From Trichosphaerium sp. ATCC 40318 (taxonomy: Eukaryota; Protista; Tubulinea), in contig JALMLS010000204.1 of assembly GCA_038496445.1 (NCBI GenBank), positions 310,001-374,000 of the forward strand: a stretch of DNA of 64,000 nucleotides, in the 5' to 3' direction. Under the pieces are notes generated by a model that saw only the letters and a list, made by a program, of their open reading frames with translations, made no database searches and was not told where the DNA came from. Numbering within the stretch: position 1 is the stretch's first letter; every line of letters starts with the position of its first letter. Of this stretch, positions 11,986 through 60,980 are shown one piece after another. The position numbers and the translations under genes are program-made.

Positions 11986-14341
11986 CTAAACGAATGCGTC
12001 AGGGTACTGCGTTGTATTTTTTTGTTACGTTTACAAAAAGTTTTTTGTTCTTTCCAAAGTTCGTGACTCAGCACAATTGTGCTTTCATAGACATACCTGT
12101 GGATTAGATGGCACGCCACGCATTATCGTACGACACCTCTGAGCAGCAAAACGGGTCATATCAAGACTTTGAGGATCAGACCACCAAGTTTCTCCCACTG
12201 CACCCAAGTATGGTGTAATTTTTGTAATGATATTTCCTAATGTCGTTAGAAAAACAGAGGTTACTGGCTATCGCTGATAAAGCGTTAATTACCCGAATCA
12301 GTAATTGCTGCGTCATCAAAAACCGTTAACTGCCCACCAAGAACTAATGCTTGTTCGCTAGCCGTACCTAAGAGTGGTTGAGACATAAAAACATCTTCTC
12401 ATTATTTTTTTGTACCCGAAAAATCTGTTGGATTTGTAGCATACATTTGTTGCCACGTGTACGATTTTTGGATATTTTCTCTTCTAGGATCAACGACATA
12501 GTATGGTCCGGATAGTATGACGTGTCCACCTAAAAATGGCAAGGGTGTCACCGAGATATATACAATGACATCATAAACGGTTTTTTGATTTTTGTATGTA
12601 CCTTTTGAGGTCAAGTCTTTAAACGCTGGCTGCCACTGTGTATTTGGTATCCAACCATCCCAAGTGTCATATGCCAAGTTAGGGTACTTTGATATTGGTG
12701 TTAGAGAAGGAAGGCCTAGCAGAACATTTCAGCAAAGTTCCTTGAGGCATCAAAAAAAAAGAAGACTTACCAGGATACCATCCAAGCGCCTTTTTGTCTA
12801 TAACAGGAGTTAGCTCGTTTCTTTTAGGCGAGAACGTACTGTATTTTGCTAGAATAGTGAGTAATCTTTCGCAGTAGTATCCCAACACTTGACTGACTTG
12901 TGTGAACCCTTTCTGTTTCATTAGAGCTTGCACAGCGGGAGATTTTTGCCATTGAGATAAATCAGTTTCGTCGAAGCCTATACCAACTTGATCTGACGGG
13001 AAAACACTAGCTACATAACTCCACATAGAGTCAAAGAATTCCCATGTTTTTTCATTAGATGGGTCAGGTAGAACACCACGTGATAATTTACCATTCTTTA
13101 AATACAGTTAAAGGGGTAGACAAGGTTAGAGGTATCGTACCGATTCATACTCAACACATAGATCAGGGTATGCATAACAAATAGAGTAAGAGTGTCCTGG
13201 TGTATCAATCTCAGGTATTATCTTAACACCGCGATGCAAAGCATACGAAACCAGGTCCTTAACATCACTCACAGAGTATGTGTGAGCCTGTTTAGAGTAA
13301 GCACCTAAGAAGAATTAACCTTAGTTTTAGCATAAAGAGCGCACCTTTCTGTGTAAGTAGAGGATATCCTGGTACTTCCAGAGGCCATGAATCGGTGTCA
13401 ATAAGGTGTAAATGTAATGAATTAAGCTTATAGAAGCTCATTTGGTCAATGAGGCCTTTAAGTGAGCTAACAGTCATAAACCTTCTTGCCGTGTCAATCA
13501 TTACTACAATTCTTGTAAGTATTCAATCCTTGACGGATCTCAAACCTCCGCGATAACTCAATCGAGGCCTATCTGATATAGTCACGAGCTTTGCGCTGTA
13601 TTCATACGAATTATAGTTAAACGTCACCAATTGAGAAAACGTTTCAAGTCCGCGAAGAGCACCTAGCAAACTATCAGGTTTTTTTCCTTTGTTCTGACTT
13701 ACCAAACACTGTATTTGCTTTCAACGTAAAGGCTGTTTTAGATAAGGTAAGATCATAGGACTCATCAGTAGATAGGGTGAGGTTTTCATTGTAAGGGAGA
13801 TTTAGAGTGACCTCCAATTTTGATACTGAGCTTGTGCCCTTTTATTGAAATATTAATAATGTGCTGTGATCTGCAGCATACGTTTTGAGTTGGTATAGGG
13901 AATAGATATTTCATATATCTAGATATTGCATCTTGTAGTATTGACCCAGATGAGGATGATGAGATACTTAACCCAAATAAGCAAAAGAGGAGAAAAATCT
14001 AACAGTGAATTCTGGAAAATTGTACCGAAAAGTTGTTGGGTTAACCGTTATTGTATCTCCACTTGAGGTCATTTGCCTTGGCAATGGCCATAATCCGTCT
14101 GGTAGAGAACCAATACCTAGAATATATGTTATCGTAGAAGAGTAACAAAGAGAGGTGAGGATAAAATTGATTTTTTTGATCTTTCTCACGTGTTTTGTTT
14201 GAAACTCTTTATTTTACCTTCACCAACGTGTTCTCGTTGATAAGTGTACTCTTCGAGTGAAGGATGTATTGGCTTGTCAAGCGACCAGCCGTGTAAAACG
14301 TTGACACAGAGTAGCAAAAATATTATTAACGAGTTGCGCAT
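11986..14341 (-). CDS. GH20 beta-N-acetylhexosaminidase-like, secreted/lysosomal
   Basis: Signal peptide. Motifs LWPLPRQ, DESYDL, GALRGLETFSQL, ISDRPRLSYRG, IDTARRF, HLHLIDTDSWPL, IIPEIDTPGH, catalytic DE in GIGFDET, and FAAQRCRTIMRG. Confidence 0.9.
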
Positions 14342-15359: not shown

Positions 15360-18300
15360 ATGTTTGCGCACATTGTTGGCTTGCTTGTAGTTTGCTCTAG
15401 TGTGCGTAGCGCTAGTTTTGGATCTGGTAACTACGGAGAGTGGTTTAATGACGAGTTTGGTACCATGCAATACTCAACCTAACTCTCAACTTCTAAACTC
15501 TCTTAAAGACATACCTGCGTATAACTTTACGGATGGACCTATGAAAATCCAAGAGAAGCCTCAGATAACGTTTCAAGTACAAGACTCTAGCTTCAACGGG
15601 TTTTATAACATACTATTTAGGTGGGTAATGCACGATTAGTGTTAATCACGTACAGTGATGGTACTGTAGCGCTTCGGCAGGATGAAGGCAGTCCAAAATT
15701 TTTGAACGACATGGATGCAGCCAATAGTCAGTTCAGAGGTAAGCCTTGATGTTTTTGACGCCCTCACGAGTATTAAGGTGGTCGTGGATACGTACACGAT
15801 GGAGAAAACGTTGTGTTAAGTACAGTTTATGACAAAAACTCAAAGCAAGAGTATTATCAGCAATTCGGCGTTGGGTATTACAAAAGGATCGTTGAGAACG
15901 TTGAAACGGGTGTACACGTTGAGAGTACACTTATGGTTCCATTTGGGTGCGATTTCTAACACGTGATTTTATTCTGAAATGAGGTAGTGACGATCCTTTG
16001 GTTTTTGAAAGAGTAGTGATTTCTAATAAAGCTTCAAAGCCTCAAAACGTTGGTTGGGTTGAATACTGGGCAAGTAAGATATTCGAACTTGATGCAAACT
16101 TTACTAGGTAAGTCAAGGTACTACTTGGTAGCTTCAAGCTAATTCGATCATTGTATAATAGAGAGTATGCAGACAAGTACACAAACAAGTTTAGTTTAGT
16201 CAAAGGTGCAAAATATTCCGGCTTGAAGAACACACCTTCACCGCCTTTTCATGGTGTTAATGCTGGTAAAATACCAGCTCAACATGATCTAAATCCTAGA
16301 GAAACATTCCTCGTTTGCTTATCACATGATATTACATCATTTGGAACAAATGGTTCTAATCTATTTGTTGATAATAATCCATTTCAACTTCATCTTGATG
16401 GATTTGACAATAGCCTCTTAACAACAGGAAAGACTTCTGTCATGGCCTTAAATATTGATAACATACAAATTAAGCCAGGTCAATCAAGTTCTTTATACTT
16501 TGCTTATGGCTATTTATCTGATGAAAAGCAAACAGTACAATCTCTCCTCAACAAGTACGAGATTGGTTTCGAAAAAATTTGGCAAAATTCAAATGAACAA
16601 TGGACGAAAACTCAAATGTCTTTGTCGGTTCCTTCAGATGGTGATTGGATACAGGTACTATATTTAGTACCTAAGGTAATTTATTTATTAAAATTAATGT
16701 AGAGAGAAAGCATATGGCATAGCTACATGATAAAATCGATGTTAACTTATGATACATTTTTTGGTAAATCAAAAAAGAAAGTAAAAAAACCTTGAAGTAA
16801 CGCTTGTTTAAAGAGCGCCATATTCTTAATCAAGCGGGTGTCTATCAGTATAGAGACGGATTTCAAGGTATGCATAGCAATTTTGTAGCAAAGCTTATTC
16901 TCTTCAGGAGCCGCACGTGACCCTCTCAATCATGTGATACCATTGATATATATGAATCAAACAGAATATGTCAAGGACACTATCTTGTACACAATTGAGG
17001 AAACGTGGGAGAATGGTAGAATTCCTTGGGCCAAATGTGCTTATGGCTCGGTAACCTTTTGTTGTAAACTGTATTATCTTATTATGCTAGGACTGCTATG
17101 ACGCCAGGAATACTAATGATACAGGTCCAGGAATACATGAAACAAAGTACTTTCCAAGCGACCTAGAGATTTGGTTAGTGAGCACATTATCTCTGTATGT
17201 ATTAGGTATGTATCTTGTCTGAACCTCCACATTTTTAACGTTGACTTGTATGTAGCCACACGTGATATTGAATTCTTAAATCAACCTGTAAACACCAATT
17301 TTGGTCAGCATACAGTTGAATCAGCTACTTGGTATGTACTGAGCATAGTCGTTTTTGTTGTAGAATTGACCTCACTCTTTGTGAATTTAGGTTCATTTTC
17401 AGTCATCTAATAAATGTTACTGGCGTTGGCAAACACAATCTAAACAAGATACTATTTTGTGATCACAACGATGGATTATACTCTTTCTTGAGCTTAAACA
17501 ATGCTCAGAAGGAAGAAGCAATTCGTACTGGCGAAAGGTACGCTACATTGATTAAATGTCACAAAACCCTCAAGCTAATACTGACGTGAGTGTGATGAAC
17601 GCAGCAATGGCAACCTACGCTTATAAAAAATATTCTGAAATGCTTGGATACGTAGGGAAAACGTGGAAGCAAGATTGTGTTGAATCACTACAAAGAGAAC
17701 AAGTAGCAGCAGTCGGAAATACTTGGAACGGAAAATGGTATAACAGGGCATGGTTGGGAAATAATTATGGATGGCTTGGTGATACAAAAGATGATACGCT
17801 GTGGCTTGAACCGAATGCTTGGGCTATATTAGGTGGCGTTAGCATCAATCAAAACCACACAGATAGCCTTGTACGCATGATATTTATCAGTTCAGCTACA
17901 GCTGTTTTTTCAGCGAATTTCGAAATTGCCATATGCGCTTTGCACGTGGTATAAGTTGATAGAAATTATTTGATATTAAAGACTACTGGCGGCTTTATTG
18001 ATGATCTTTTCCTTAAGGTTAAAGAGATAAATACAAGAAATAGAGACGTGTCACCAATTGGGGCATTATTTAGTAGTAAAACACATTTAACTAAATATCA
18101 CTACACAAGTACCCACCTTCCTACAAACTGACCTTTCTTCGATACAAGTTTACTCTTGCTTTAGGTTTTTGGTATTGCGGCACATTACCTCTTCAGGTGA
18201 GGATTTTTTAACAACTATTCGAGTTCTTTGTTTTTTCTTATTTTATTCTTCATTTACAGCAAGCTTTTGGGCAAACTGGATACAATGACCTAGCTTATGA

Positions 18301-18982: not shown

Positions 18983-19360
18983 TACCAGGATGCCAGAGAG
19001 CAATACATATCAATCAATAAATGCATGGTTTCTTTTTAATGTAACCTCTTTGAGTACATTTCTTTGTATTGGCGTTCAAAGTCAACTGCAAATTTTACTT
19101 CTTTAGTTCATGGTACCCAATATTTATACACTAGCAGTACAACACTAAGACATACTTTTTACTGTAGTACGATAAACAAATGGGAGGTTCTATCCTCGGG
19201 TTTGGAAGTTCAAATAAAAACAACTCCAAATAAGCGGCAAAAGGGCAGATAGTTAACAGGTTTATACAATCTCCGTTTACCATTATTGAACCAAGATTAA
19301 TGGGTTCCTCTGTACATATTTTCCTTTACCAATTCATGGCATTTGAATCAAAGGGGCTCT

Positions 19361-21308
19361 CTAGCTAATAATTCTATCTATGAACATGTGAAATCACACC
19401 ACATCACATTTTTCTCGAATAGAACCTACACGTGCTTCTTAGCCAATGTGAGGTTTTAATCAAAAAGTCCTACCTTTCCATACAGTCCATCTTCCAACCA
19501 ACTCAATTGCTGTCTAATAAACCTGGTTAGAACGAACAAACTACTTCAGGGAGGCAGCAACCTCTAAACTTCTCAAATCCATCATGTCAATATCAGACTT
19601 AAAAGGAATGAATTTTTCGGATGTCTTAAGGACTTTCATGGCTTCTTGTGCTGTTTTAGAATGTCTAAGGACATCAATCATACCCTAGTAGAAAATTTAA
19701 TACAATAGTTTAGCACGTGATTAAAGTTAACTTACAGCTTGAAAACCAATAAGTTCTTCATCTTGATAAATTCGATTTACATCAACATTTATTTTACCAT
19801 CTTCGTTTTTGATAACCGTCTCAAGTCTTTGGCTCTCTTGTTGTGTATTTGTAAAAAAGAAAAGCATTGTACTATCATTTAGTACCACATGGTTTTATTC
19901 CTTTTATTTTGGACACACGTGTAAAATCATGTGCTTCAACAATTTTCTTTAGCCTGTTTTTTTGTTTTAGTTGGTACTCTAACTCAAATTAAAGCAACGT
20001 TGAGTACCTTCTGAACTCTTCTCTTAAGTTTTCTGAATCTTCTTTACCATTTATCGTATTGCCTAATCTCTCTAGTATAACTACTTCTACATTTGGACAA
20101 GAATCTAGTACAACTGGAAGTAAAGCAAACACCTAAAACCAAGTTAAGTCAATAAGTAAAAATAAATCACAATAATCTTCACAAACCTCTTCAGGTACAG
20201 GTCCGTCATGAGAATCTCTTCTAAATTTACCCCCACTAGGGTCACATGTTGGGTTGCTAAACCTTCCACCACTCAAGTGAATCTTTAAGAATAGTTATTT
20301 AGATGAAGCAAAAACTTGAGCTCAAAAAATCCTACCTCGAGTACTTTATCCAATGGGTACAATGAGAGCAAGGTTTCGATGTCCATATCAAAATTATATA
20401 ATTGGCAATACAGGTTGTGAATATCAAGTAAGATAAAACCATCGATGGGACTCAAGATTTTGTTCAAAAAAGAACCTTGCTCAAGAGCTCCCTAACAGGA
20501 TTTTAGAAGAAAAAAAATAACAATCTTTTTTACATTTTTATGCCAAGACAATGCAAGGTTTTCCATTCCAATTTTAACCTTTAAAGTTGTCACATAGAGT
20601 TAATAGAATCATAACGTCGCTTACATCTATACCCACTATGTCTTGTAGCATTTTCATACGCATCTGCGTACCAAGGATAGCTCCTAAGAAGGTTACTGTT
20701 AGTTAAATCAACCGAAAGATGGTCACGTGCCTTTTGTGTAGGGCACGGGAAGAGGTGCTCCATGAACCTAATTATGTATAGGCATGACATACAAAGATTG
20801 AATATATTTGCGTACAGCTTCACCAGCTGAACTGCAGCCAACATGATCGGAGATGTGTTTGAACTTATACTTACTAGTTATCTTTGCAAAGTGGTTTAAA
20901 TAACGCTCTTGACGCGGTTTCCACTGTGAACTGTACGTTTTATTACGTTTTTGTGGGACTGTAGTCGTAGAATAGTTAAAAAAGTACCTCATCGGGCTGA
21001 ATGTAATAGCGTGACCATATAGAGAGCCTGTGATGCGCATTTAGAATTGTTATAGTGTAATCTATACCTTTGTCGCCGTATTTGGTTAAAATAGCGTTCG
21101 ACCACTCTGGTATGCCTCCAAAACCCATGTCTAGGCTACAACACGAATTAAATCGTATTAGTAACGGTTTTTACCTATACTCCACTGCTTCGATCTCTCC
21201 ATTGTCAAACAGCTCATCAAACGCTTGTTTGAACCCATTGCTGTAAGGCATAAAACTTACACCTACCAAAGGCCTGGAGCGAATAGATTTATCTCCATTT
21301 GGCTCCAT
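19361..21308 (-). CDS. DUF692 / MNIO multinuclear non-heme iron enzyme (ChrH-like), about 410 aa, 13-14 introns
   Basis: Hand-spliced protein: RPLVGVSFMP..EAVEYSLDMG..LYGHAITFSP..KHISDHVG..HGAPLPVP..IGMENLA..GFILLDIHNLYCQ..YPLDKVLEIHLSGG..RRDSHDGPVPEEV..CPNVEVVILERLG, then a C-terminal extension ..DLRSLETAIELVGRW. The DUF692 ligand motifs H, SDH, EN, DxxN, HxxG, DxH and E occur in the expected order. Confidence 0.88.
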
Positions 21309-21448: not shown

Positions 21449-22162
21449 TTAGTTGTCTTCTGTACTCGCAGCGTCTTTGTCTTTTTGCACACCCAGAAGG
21501 TATTCATAGTCAAGTTTTCGCTTTCCGTCAACGACAAATATGATCCTCTCCATCTTCTTAGTGCCTGGACGCTCCAGCCACTTTTTTGTTTCTTCGACAG
21601 CTATCTGTGCTGCCTCTCTAAGAGGATAGCCATAAAACCCAGTAGCGATGCAAGGAATCGCTAGAGATGTTATTGGATAAGCGTTAACAAGGGCTAGTAG
21701 CGTTTGGTAGCAACTCCTGAGCAATTTCGGTTGAGGCTTTCCGTCATCGTCTAAATATGGTCCTACTGTATGTAGTACATATGTAGCAGGTAATTTATAG
21801 CCTTTAGTTATTTTTGTATCTCCTGTAGCGCATAAGTTGTCCTTTGTTATCATAGCGCATTCTCTTTGAAGTAGAGGCCCTGCTGCTTTATGTACGGCCT
21901 CGTCTATACCACCTCCACCAAGTAAACCTTCATTTGCAGCGTTAACTATCGCATCTACCTCTAAACGCGTAATGTCGCCCTTGAATATCGATAAAACGCC
22001 TTCTATGATTGGAATATCTGAAAGAGCTACAAAATTATCTTTGCATCTGTAATACTTCCTCTTGGTTGCTCTGTCAGTGATCAGACTGATATTTAATTCC
22101 TCTGCATCAATTTCTTTAGACAGGACTGTTGAACACTGCTCTTTAAACCAGCTGTGACTCAT
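21449..22162 (-). CDS. Macro domain ADP-ribosylhydrolase / O-acetyl-ADP-ribose deacetylase (MacroD/YmdB type), single exon
   Basis: GDITRLEVDAIVNAANEGLLGGGGIDEAVHKAAG, TKGYKLPATYVLHTVGP, IPCIATGFYGYP. Confidence 0.9.
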   Translation of the reverse strand: MSHSWFKEQCSTVLSKEIDAEELNISLITDRATKRKYYRCKDNFVALSDIPIIEGVLSIFKGDITRLEVDAIVNAANEGLLGGGGIDEAVHKAAGPLLQRECAMITKDNLCATGDTKITKGYKLPATYVLHTVGPYLDDDGKPQPKLLRSCYQTLLALVNAYPITSLAIPCIATGFYGYPLREAAQIAVEETKKWLERPGTKKMERIIFVVDGKRKLDYEYLLGVQKDKDAASTEDN

Positions 22163-48433: not shown

Positions 48434-49651
48434 TCTCATTCGAAGAATAAAAAGATAGACAGCAAACTTGGTCGTTTGAGTTTACTGGATATTCCATGTG
48501 AACTTCAAACTTATATTTGTACTTTCAACATAGAAGCATTCACAAAATTCCACAGCCTATCGAAGAGAGCTGCAATTAATACACATTTTGATGAAACACT
48601 ACAAAGGAAAGGATTATGGATACAATGGTATAAAAGTGGCAAAGTAAAGTGTTATATACACATAGGGAGTGGGGTGTCTAAAGAATGGTATGAGAGTGGA
48701 CAATTGAGGTTCAAGAGCATGTGGGTTGACAACAAACAAAATGGTGAGAGTAAGGAATGGTATGAGAACGGGCAACTAAAAGGAAAGCATGTATGGGTTG
48801 ATGATAATCGGCATGGCGAAAGTAAGGTGTGGTATGAGGGCGGACAACTAAAAGGACAGTATACGTTTGTTGCTGGTAAACTGTGTGGTGAGAATAAGGG
48901 ATGGTATGAGAGTGGTCAACTAAAGGAACAGTATATGTTTGTTGATGATTTTCTAAATGGTGAGAGTAACGAATGGTATGAGAATGGACAACTTCGTACA
49001 CAAACCATGTGGGTTAATAATAAAGAGCACGGTGAAAGCAAATCATGGTATAAGAGTGGGCAACTAAAGGATCATCAGACATTTGTAGATGGTGAGCTGA
49101 ATGGTGAGTGTAAAGGATGGTATGAGAATGGGCAGCTTCAGGGTCAATTGACGTGGGTTGATGGTAAAGCACATGGTGAATGTAAAGCATGGTATGAGAG
49201 CGGACAACTAAAGGAATATAAGACATTTGTAGATGATAAACAGAATGGTGAGTGTAAAGAATGGTATGAGAACGGACAGCTGCAAGGACAGCATATATGG
49301 GTTGATGATAATAGGCATGGCGAAAGTAAGGTGTGGTATGAGGACGGACAAGTTAAGGAACATTACATGTTTGTTGATGATAAACAGCATGGTGAGTGTA
49401 AAACATGGTATGAGAGCGGACAACTAAAGGAACAGTGCATGTGGGTTGATGGTAAACCGCATGGTGAAAGTAAAGAATGGCATGCTAATGGGACGCTTGA
49501 GGGACAAGGCATGTGGGTTGATGGTAAACCGCATGGTGAAATTAAGAGATGGTATGAGAATGGGCAACTCGCTGAACTAAGTACATTTATTGATGGGAAA
49601 CCGAACAATGAAACCAAGGAATGGTATGAGAACGGACAAATAAAACAATAA
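48434..49651 (+). CDS. F-box-like + MORN-variant (YwqK-like) repeat protein; terminal exon, upstream exon not located
   Basis: LLDIPCELQTYIC followed by about 14 repeats of WYExGQL. No ATG; the frame opens right after an acceptor-like TTCTTGTAG ending at 48433. Confidence 0.8.
   Translation, partial: SHSKNKKIDSKLGRLSLLDIPCELQTYICTFNIEAFTKFHSLSKRAAINTHFDETLQRKGLWIQWYKSGKVKCYIHIGSGVSKEWYESGQLRFKSMWVDNKQNGESKEWYENGQLKGKHVWVDDNRHGESKVWYEGGQLKGQYTFVAGKLCGENKGWYESGQLKEQYMFVDDFLNGESNEWYENGQLRTQTMWVNNKEHGESKSWYKSGQLKDHQTFVDGELNGECKGWYENGQLQGQLTWVDGKAHGECKAWYESGQLKEYKTFVDDKQNGECKEWYENGQLQGQHIWVDDNRHGESKVWYEDGQVKEHYMFVDDKQHGECKTWYESGQLKEQCMWVDGKPHGESKEWHANGTLEGQGMWVDGKPHGEIKRWYENGQLAELSTFIDGKPNNETKEWYENGQIKQ
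48670..49645 (+). repeat. Tandem 72-bp (24-aa) coding repeat array
   Basis: The unit TGGTATGAGAxxGGACAACT recurs with 72-bp period. Near-identical copies at ca. 48795 vs 49299 and ca. 49437 vs 49509. Confidence 0.9.
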
Positions 49652-59690: not shown

Positions 59691-60980
59691 CTACGATAAA
59701 TACTTTGACCACGGAAAGGATTTATCGTTGTTGTCCATGTGCGCCCAATAATGTCCACTCAATTGGCCATTGTCATCATAATAACTTTTGTACCTCAGAG
59801 TACCGTCAGAGTTCCAAAACTCATCTGACTTTTCACCGGTAAGTTGTCTTGTAAACATGAGTTGACCATCGCTATACCACTTCTTTTGAAACTCCTTAGT
59901 GTAATGCTTTGACATTTGTCCATTTTCATACCATTCCTTATTTTGTTGGCCTTTTTTGTAACTTTTCATTTGACCATTTTCGTAATAGTACACAAACTCA
60001 ACAACATCACCAAGAAGACTGTAAGTCTTTCTCGCCTTTATTTGGTCACTCTCGTCATACCACCATATCCATTCACCTGCCCTCATGTTGTTTTTCATTT
60101 TACCTTCCGCAAAAACACAGCCACTTGCATACCACCCAGTGCATGGACCATTCTTGTACCCGTCTTTGTAGAGTTGTCGAATCTTTCTGCCTTTTGCAGT
60201 GTACTCCCTTATGCCATCAAGTTTATCATGTTTATATGTTGTTAGCCACCTAAGATTGTTTCGGTAGTGCTCAGTGTGTGCCCCATGAAGCCTTCCTTGG
60301 TTGTCAAAAGCTTTTCTTTGGATGTAAAACTCTGTGGAGGAGTAAGCTCGTCTCCATGCCTTCCAATACCCAACTTGTTTTAATTCTATTGAATAATGTG
60401 TCATAAATGCAGCTTTTCGTGAGAGAACATGCCTTAAACATAGATATTAGAACCCGGAACAAAATGCAACCAATTACCATTTAGAGAAGGTTGTACGTTC
60501 CATTTCGCAGATGTACTGTTGTATTTCAGGTGGTAATGACAACAGCAAGGAAGTATCGTCATCTAGAATGGTAGCGTGTTCAGCTATAACTCTTAGTGCA
60601 GGCACTGTTCTTCTGTTTGCCTTTAAAATGCGACGGGATACTTCAACAACTGGTTTTGGTTTTGGTTTTGCACTTGTTGCTACATCAGGAGGTGCTGCTT
60701 GAGGTTTGGGTTTAAAAGCGAGTTGCTCCTCTTTTATCTGTTTTTTGGGTATGAAAGTAAATGAAGGTACAGCATCAGCATGAGCCGAAAATAGAAAAAG
60801 AGGTGGTTGATCTGCTTCAGCTTTTGTATTTGACAAAGGAGTAGTCGGGTTGAAAACAAACGGAGTACCTTGAGCGGAATAAATACGAAGGCAAAACAAC
60901 AAGAAGAATAAGTAGAAAAATAATCGCCAAAGAATACCTTTGATACTACTACTGTCACTGGGCTTTGTAGGTTTTTGCAT
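59691..60980 (-). CDS. F-box-like + MORN-variant repeat protein, paralog of 48434-49651
   Basis: LLSLPPEIQQYIC..SKW splices (60476-60434) in frame to HVLSRKAAFMTHY and then degenerate YYENGQ/WYENGQ/WYSDGQ repeats. Confidence 0.78.

Follow-up and report, generated by a model that had tools for sequence, protein, structure and literature searches.

We analysed a 64-kb stretch of the genome of Trichosphaerium sp. ATCC 40318 (contig JALMLS010000204.1, positions 310,001 to 374,000; hereafter the window, in whose numbering all coordinates are given) and found on its minus strand an intron-rich gene for an MNIO, a member of the iron-enzyme family PF05114 (MbnB_TglH_ChrH, formerly DUF692). The gene runs from an ATG at 21308 to a TGA stop at 19396-19394 and comprises 15 exons and 14 introns, which together encode 412 amino acids with no internal stop. 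A sequence-only reading of this locus had proposed 13-14 short introns and a single open frame of about 410 amino acids between 19361 and 21308. The introns and the frame are borne out by our model, and the proposed start stands as the ATG at 21308, but position 19361 lies in the 3' untranslated region (UTR), beyond the stop at 19394.

Exon borders were placed by translating positions 21450-19200 in three frames, across which the family motifs are scattered with short intervening stretches rich in stops, and joining the coding segments at GT-AG borders. The introns measure 39-57 nt; 13 are of the GT-AG type and one is GC-AG (20684-20730), at the same position as in the sequence-only reading. 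Retention of an intron would bring a stop into frame in 11 of the 14 cases, and the lengths of five of the 14 are not a multiple of three.

Splicing was also assessed in public sequencing runs, represented by two low-share, low-depth contig sets from two studies (X1 and X2) whose library type was guessed; the comparison was made with contigs and not with raw RNA reads. The X1 and X2 contigs match the locus at an identity of at least 99% and skip parts of it with CT..AC ends, which correspond to GT..AG on the gene strand. An X2 contig joins 20336|20282, while an X1 contig joins 19562|19513 and 19474|19425. Ten further junctions sit in gap-free alignment with homologues, and the junction 19886|19836, which falls in a variable linker, is a prediction. 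The GC-AG junction found no RNA support in the X1 and X2 contigs. The MNIO gene is a spliced, expressed nuclear gene of an amoeba-like eukaryote, and the coordinates of its parts are collected in Table 1.

Several alternative borders were rejected. In intron 5, a GT lies four bases downstream of the GC donor, but if it served as the donor, no acceptor would keep the frame matching the homologues. For exon 6, an acceptor at about 20695-20696 introduces a four-residue insertion relative to all homologues, which the acceptor at 20684 removes. The acceptors 19522 and 19437 for exons 14 and 15 lead to an internal stop, and the X1 contig sets these borders at 19513 and 19425.

Table 1. Parts of the MNIO gene in window coordinates, with the basis for each.
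Feature	Position	Strand	Basis
Whole MNIO coding span	19394..21308	-	Exon model; full-length alignment with bacterial and amoebal homologues
Exon 1 (residues 1-45), N-terminal strand, PLVGVSFMP motif	21175..21308	-	Following intron equals Balamuthia intron 1 in column and phase (2)
Exon 2	21068..21135	-	GT-AG borders; both junctions within ungapped alignment
Exon 3, His73 (LYGH), Fe1 ligand position	20988..21027	-	His in 75/75; same position as H65 in L005 (DybH-type protein)
Exon 4, Asp109-His110 (SDH), Fe1 ligand position	20816..20930	-	MNIO_ChrH positions 72-102, 17.4 bits; His invariant
Exon 5 (GAPLPVPYTK)	20731..20767	-	Homologue alignment; GC donor directly after
Intron 5, sole GC-AG intron, 47 nt	20684..20730	-	Frame match to homologues; predicted
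Exon 6	20625..20683	-	Exon model and homologue alignment
Exon 7, Glu157 (MEN)	20534..20578	-	Glu in 74/75, Asn in 75/75 aligned members
Exon 8, Asp189, His191, Cys195 (LDIHNLYCQ)	20336..20491	-	PF05114 and MNIO_ChrH (positions 157-205) matches; 3' junction in X2 contig
Exon 9, His220 (EIHLSGG), Asp241/His243/Asp244 (RRDSHD), Fe2 and Fe3 ligand positions	20187..20282	-	Invariant columns; MNIO_ChrH positions 206-235; 5' junction in X2 contig
Exon 10, Glu271 (ILERLG), barrel end	20008..20132	-	MNIO_ChrH positions 236-275, 30.4 bits; Glu in 75/75
Exon 11, variable linker	19886..19953	-	GT-AG borders; junction 19886|19836 predicted only
Exon 12, start of C-terminal domain	19736..19836	-	Bacterial C-terminal-domain profile matches residues 338-402
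Exon 13, C-terminal domain	19562..19684	-	Same profile; 3' junction in X1 contig
Exon 14, C-terminal domain, LETAIELVGRW motif	19474..19513	-	Both junctions in X1 contig; motif common to all homologues
Exon 15, coding part with TGA stop	19394..19425	-	5' junction in X1 contig
3' UTR, at least 72 nt	19322..19393	-	X1 contig runs unspliced to 19322

Membership of the ChrH/DybH subfamily

Profile searches (Pfam, NCBIfam) and the large protein searches were run with single exons as queries, and the spliced protein was compared at full length by scripts. Exon 8 matched PF05114 above the gathering cut-off of 25 (29.0 bits, E = 7.9e-7) and exon 4 gave a weak, collinear match, in agreement with the DUF692/MNIO identity that the sequence-only reading had assigned. 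The top model for exons 4, 8, 9 and 10 was the NCBIfam model MNIO_ChrH (NF050165), which the four exons match in collinear order (Table 1). For exon 8, MNIO_ChrH reached 63.9 bits (E = 1.4e-17), well beyond chance, as compared with 23.2 for BufB, 20.7 for HvfB and 12.7 for ApyH. This lead of about 40 bits over BufB and HvfB, the collinear matches and the presence of the C-terminal domain described below all agree with the ChrH kind of enzyme proposed earlier. A grouping with xylose-isomerase/AP-endonuclease barrels, which the same reading had named as the result that would speak against it, did not occur.

The metal-ligand motifs that had been listed are likewise present in order, namely LYGH (residues 70-73), SDH (108-110), MEN (156-158), LDIHN (188-192), EIHLSGG (218-224), RDSHD (240-244) and ILER (269-272). 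In an alignment of 75 members of the subfamily, the columns of H73, H110, E157, D189, H191, H220, D241, H243 and E271 are conserved in 74-75 of the 75 sequences, and the cysteine of HNLYCQ in the window protein falls in a column conserved to the same degree. The positions in the window protein correspond to the ligands named for DybH, which are H65/H102 for Fe1, D179/H210 for Fe2 and D228/H230 for Fe3 (PMC13733907). The numbering of a Spirosoma protein (L005) equals that of DybH at H65, H102, D179 and H210 and is offset by two residues at D228/H230.

Members of the ChrH/DybH subfamily typically carry a C-terminal domain that is lacking in MbnB and TglH (PMC12636315). A profile built from 41 bacterial domains of this type, with no eukaryotic sequences among them, scored 48.8 bits against the window protein (residues 338-402), while the best of 1000 shuffles reached 6.4, and the matching region spans RNA-confirmed junctions. 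In full-length alignment the window protein is 33-40% identical to its Bacteroidota, Melainabacteria-type and amoebal homologues, and exon 8, when used to scan prokaryotic genomes, returned five Bacteroidota loci whose proteins (377-380 amino acids) align with it end to end at 33-37% identity. Trees place the window protein among the members of the ChrH/DybH subfamily. Together, these comparisons show a full-length ChrH/DybH-subfamily MNIO, with a predicted TIM barrel that has all of the iron-ligand positions and a fused C-terminal domain. This architecture is ordinary for the known subfamily. The unusual features are the host, how deeply the gene is domesticated and the apparently unlinked substrate.

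DybH from Dyadobacter crusticola and its Bacteroidota relatives (L001-L005) resemble the window protein in architecture, with the C-terminal domain fused to the MNIO barrel and a length of about 380-410 amino acids (PMC12636315, PMC13733907). They also have the same ligand set and the motifs HNLYCQ, EIHxSGG and RRDxHD in common with it, but identity stays at 33-37% and the window protein falls outside the Bacteroidota clade. ChrH, the chryseobasin maturase of Chryseobacterium (NF050165; PMC10214503), is likewise a member of the ChrH/DybH subfamily and shares its C-terminal domain with the window protein. However, ChrH S-methylates its product (+10 Da) and sits in a Chryseobacterium-specific cluster (PMC10214503), and the window protein is not an NF050165 equivalog. 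Members of the Melainabacteria/Myxococcota type (MelH/MelHc and ArlH, PMC12636315; here P0175/L008 and P0006/L010) are among the best full-length matches (P0175, 272.8 bits) and have a GLSLMP-type N-terminal motif in common with the window protein. Their genes are bacterial, intron-free and clustered with precursors, and the C-terminal domain of MelH is a separate protein whereas it is fused in the amoeba. A sequence search of the PDB turned up no structure from the ChrH/DybH subfamily; its sole match, a very distant one, was 8HCI ('DUF692 family protein'; E = 0.016 for exon 8 and 23 bits for the homologue from the amoeba Pellita), which we take to be TglH. TglH and MbnB, which are structurally solved MNIOs, belong to the same superfamily as the window protein but are without the C-terminal domain and need the partners TglI and MbnC, respectively (PMC12636315).

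Eukaryotic relatives and the origin of the gene

An exhaustive HMMER search with exon 8 against 1.84 billion cluster representatives gave 157 matches, none of them above 64% identity. Since the protein of the neighbouring macro-domain gene likewise had no match above 66% (over partial length), the proteins of this genome are missing from the collections. Among the best full-length matches of the window protein was a transcript of Pellita catalonica (P0059), and a search seeded with the Pellita sequence led to a protein of Balamuthia mandrillaris (P0158), annotated as 'DUF692 domain-containing protein', and to a contig protein (P0157). A further search seeded with the Balamuthia protein recovered no additional named eukaryote, so that the eukaryotic gene family is rare. 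Balamuthia mandrillaris causes fatal brain infection; Balamuthia and Pellita are both Discosea but belong to different major lineages. All three proteins have the two-domain layout of the window protein and are 36-40% identical to it. The Balamuthia gene lies on a 349-kb contig with eukaryotic genes around it and has four introns, as compared with 14 in the window gene.

In a maximum-likelihood tree (LG+C20+F+G4), the window protein, P0158, P0059 and P0157 form a eukaryote-only group (ultrafast bootstrap 96, Shimodaira-Hasegawa-like approximate likelihood-ratio test (SH-aLRT) 95) that is present in 95% of the bootstrap trees and has the window protein as its earliest branch. A separate clade with 100% support comprises the 13 Bacteroidota-type rows. 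The window protein lies outside this clade and groups with the three other eukaryotic sequences, so that its earlier assignment to the Chryseobacterium ChrH branch does not hold. The first introns of the window and Balamuthia genes occupy the same alignment column in the same phase (2), and the GC-AG intron of the window gene falls in the glycine codon that Balamuthia intron 3 also interrupts, at a distance of one base. The eukaryote-only clade and the intron in common with Balamuthia fit one old bacterium-to-amoeba transfer, as the sequence-only reading had suggested. Judging from the phylogeny and the introns, an ancestor of the discosean amoebae would have acquired the gene from a bacterium once, and the introns would have been gained later; the closest relatives of the window gene are those of Balamuthia and Pellita.

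Two of the relatives have features of their own. The Balamuthia protein (L007, 10001-11735) carries two insertions that the window protein lacks: an acidic, low-complexity one of about 27 amino acids in the barrel, immediately ahead of the LLDxHN strand, and a small one following ERxGNT. On the contig that encodes P0157 (L011), the MNIO frame (504-1718) is uninterrupted over 404 amino acids, and the C-terminal end of a HECT-type ubiquitin ligase, a domain recognised by eye, lies at 3-179, 325 bp upstream. The source of P0157 is probably eukaryotic, and its gene is either intron-free or represented by an RNA-derived contig.

Proposed chemistry and competing explanations

DybH and ChrH target a C-terminal CPxCGxG, and these seven residues are enough for modification even on GFP, with no partner protein (PMC12636315). 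The second cysteine is converted to a thioaldehyde, a hydantoin is formed from the backbone that follows and the first cysteine closes a macrocycle (net -4 Da), with all three iron sites being required for the full product (PMC13733907). In 7 of 7 bacterial relatives examined, which come from distant clades, a gene directly upstream of the enzyme gene encodes a precursor with a CxxCG(M/L)G end. These loci hold one or two small genes each, with the ends CPACGMG, CPACGLG, CPGCGMG, CTGCGLG and CYACGMG followed by a stop; CTGCGLG and CYACGMG indicate that the second position of the motif tolerates Thr and Tyr. In the Bacteroidota, the enzyme gene follows directly on that of a lipoprotein-type precursor with the end CP[AG]CG[ML]G, and the Melainabacteria-type precursors end in CxxCG(M/L)G, whereas the amoeba gene is interrupted by 14 introns and lacks a linked precursor. 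Given that precursors of this kind occur in distant relatives, the substrate rule holds throughout the subfamily, to either side of the eukaryotic clade.

That the amoeba enzyme has retained its ligands, the invariant columns of the subfamily and the C-terminal domain points to the same reaction on a CxxCGxG tail as its most likely activity. By analogy with the bacterial enzymes, a site of two to three irons would use O2 to turn the second cysteine of CPxCGxG into a thioaldehyde. The backbone would then rearrange to a hydantoin ring and a small macrocycle would close onto the first cysteine, with a net change of -4 Da. No partner protein would be required, and little beyond the motif would be recognised. 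The window protein has no signal peptide evident by eye, suggesting that it would act in the cytosol, like the bacterial enzymes that act before export. Its substrate would be encoded elsewhere in the genome, unlinked to the enzyme gene. From the gene we infer that a eukaryotic pathway for RiPPs (peptides that are ribosomally synthesised and then modified post-translationally) may exist. Taken jointly, an amoeba MNIO of the ChrH/DybH type that arrived in a single transfer, retains the bacterial type of chemistry and acts on an unlinked substrate is probably the correct explanation of the locus. We hypothesize further that discosean amoebae run a vertically inherited MNIO pathway, which would install the hydantoin-macrocycle on nuclear-encoded peptides ending in CPACGMG, with enzyme and substrate genes unlinked; we regard the chances for and against this broader proposal as evenly balanced.

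Several observations weigh against the joint explanation. The equivalog cut-off of MNIO_ChrH is 600 bits, and the scores of the four matching exons, which cover 163 of 412 residues, total about 125 bits, a gap that the remaining, less conserved exons cannot close; by the strict NCBI definition, the window protein is therefore no chryseobactin maturase. It is about 35% identical to the characterised enzyme types, and either its substrate or its chemistry may have drifted. A search for CxxCGxG and looser forms of it in all six frames of the 64-kb window gave nothing credible, and no frame ending in CxxCGxG was found within 10 kb of the Balamuthia MNIO gene. The nearby genes in the window (macro domain, GH20-like, GH94-like) give no sign of a cluster or of a link to peptide maturation. 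With respect to origin, one exact intron coincidence out of four would be expected by chance about 1 in 20 times by a naive count, and we take the shared intron as supporting, not decisive, for common origin. The window protein and P0157 were both flagged for odd composition, and an AT-rich likeness could help the eukaryotic clade. Finally, RNA-type support covers only 3 of the 14 junctions and comes from low-depth contigs of guessed library type.

The strongest alternative is that the enzyme is active but redirected, acting on some other cysteine-containing peptide or protein or on a non-RiPP target, and that no chryseobasin-like product is made. A linked substrate gene was found neither in the window nor near the Balamuthia gene, the window protein sits on a long branch (1.13 changes per column) and is 33-37% identical to the bacterial members, and the reactions of MNIOs are diverse across the superfamily (PMC12452194, PMC13733907), all of which would be consistent with a change of substrate. 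However, the window protein has kept the C-terminal domain together with every invariant column of the subfamily, including the HNLYCQ cysteine, and a CxxCGxG tail accompanies every bacterial relative examined, in distant clades. We consider redirection unlikely, though it deserves more weight than the other alternatives.

Somewhat less likely again is that the four eukaryotic genes stem from separate transfers out of related bacteria, or from transfer between amoebae. The distribution is patchy, with only Balamuthia, Pellita, the P0157 contig and the window genome having been found in very large protein collections, and the eukaryotic proteins are mutually 36-51% identical. The P0157 frame is uninterrupted on its contig, and the trees single out no bacterial sister group for the eukaryotic clade. 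Separate acquisitions are nevertheless disfavoured by the support for the eukaryote-only group and by the two Balamuthia introns, one at an identical position and phase and the other in the same glycine codon, and a single old transfer remains the origin that we prefer.

It is very improbable that the gene is a transcribed but functionless relic of a transferred gene in the course of decay. There is no close relative with which selection could be measured and the RNA support is thin, but the frame is open for 412 codons over 15 exons, the ligand columns and the invariant columns of the subfamily are kept, and the C-terminal domain is still recognisable by its profile. Moreover, the gain of 14 introns implies a long residence, during which a frame not under selection would have broken. 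Bacterial contamination or an assembly artefact, the first of which has a precedent in DUF692 genes of fungal assemblies that were ascribed to contaminating or associated bacteria (PMC8070225), is scarcely credible for a gene that has 14 spliceosomal-type introns (three of them removed in contigs of two independent runs), eukaryotic homologues in Balamuthia and Pellita with introns among them, a G+C content in line with that of its host (exons 0.39 and introns 0.31 versus 0.35-0.42 for the window) and a eukaryotic macro-domain gene 140 bp upstream, and here we concur with the sequence-only reading.

MNIOs are treated as bacterial in the searchable papers (PMC12452194, PMC12636315, PMC13733907), and, among the papers found, the fungal assemblies just cited are the only eukaryotic ones for which DUF692 is mentioned. 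A literature search, which did not cover subscription journals, returned no paper on a eukaryotic MNIO or on the Balamuthia, Pellita or P0157 proteins. As far as can be told, the amoeba MNIO family is therefore public, with the Balamuthia protein in GenBank under a generic name, yet undescribed. The discosean MNIO pathway, if true, would be the first in eukaryotes and would differ from every bacterial example in having enzyme and substrate unlinked; it would mean that a peptide-modification pathway survived transfer into a eukaryote with its two genes apart. If the enzyme acts like its bacterial relatives, amoebae would make a peptide or protein tail with a hydantoin-macrocycle, and a second, very different host could help in finding the role of this structure. 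Testing the idea would be inexpensive, given the seven-residue recognition tag that has been reported.

Bacterial relatives and neighbouring genes

Some of the bacterial sequences recovered are of interest in themselves. One Melainabacteria/Myxococcota-type locus (L008, 5500-5982) holds two tandem precursors, ending in CTGCGLG and CPACGMG, and another (L010, 5711-5977) holds one that ends in CYACGMG; in place of a lipoprotein signal, the N-terminal part of these precursors is hydrophobic and resembles a membrane anchor. Three further members of the subfamily (P0064, P0094 and P0104) are high-G+C bacterial proteins of about 720 amino acids, an MNIO-dehydrogenase architecture that is not mentioned in the MNIO papers examined. 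The C-terminus of P0064 matches the zinc-type alcohol dehydrogenase domains PF08240 and PF00107, and, judged by their sequences, P0094 and P0104 look to be built in the same way.

In the window itself, a macro-domain gene (21452-22162, minus strand; PF01661, E = 6e-38) ends about 140 bp upstream of the MNIO start on the same strand. It is intronless and encodes 237 amino acids, so that an intron-free gene adjoins one with 14 introns, which is a striking contrast. Its best matches are metagenomic proteins at 56% identity; among named sources, Balamuthia mandrillaris comes closest (47%). On the other side of the MNIO gene, an exon-sized frame at 12679-13026 (minus strand) matches the GH20 catalytic domain (E = 4e-9) and a frame at 17556-17954 (plus strand) is GH94-like (E = 2e-6); both probably belong to intron-bearing genes that flank the MNIO gene. 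Farther away are two long intron-free frames, at 48476-49651 (plus strand) and 59691-60404 (minus strand), built from variants of the MORN repeat; the first matches PF07661 at E = 6e-63.

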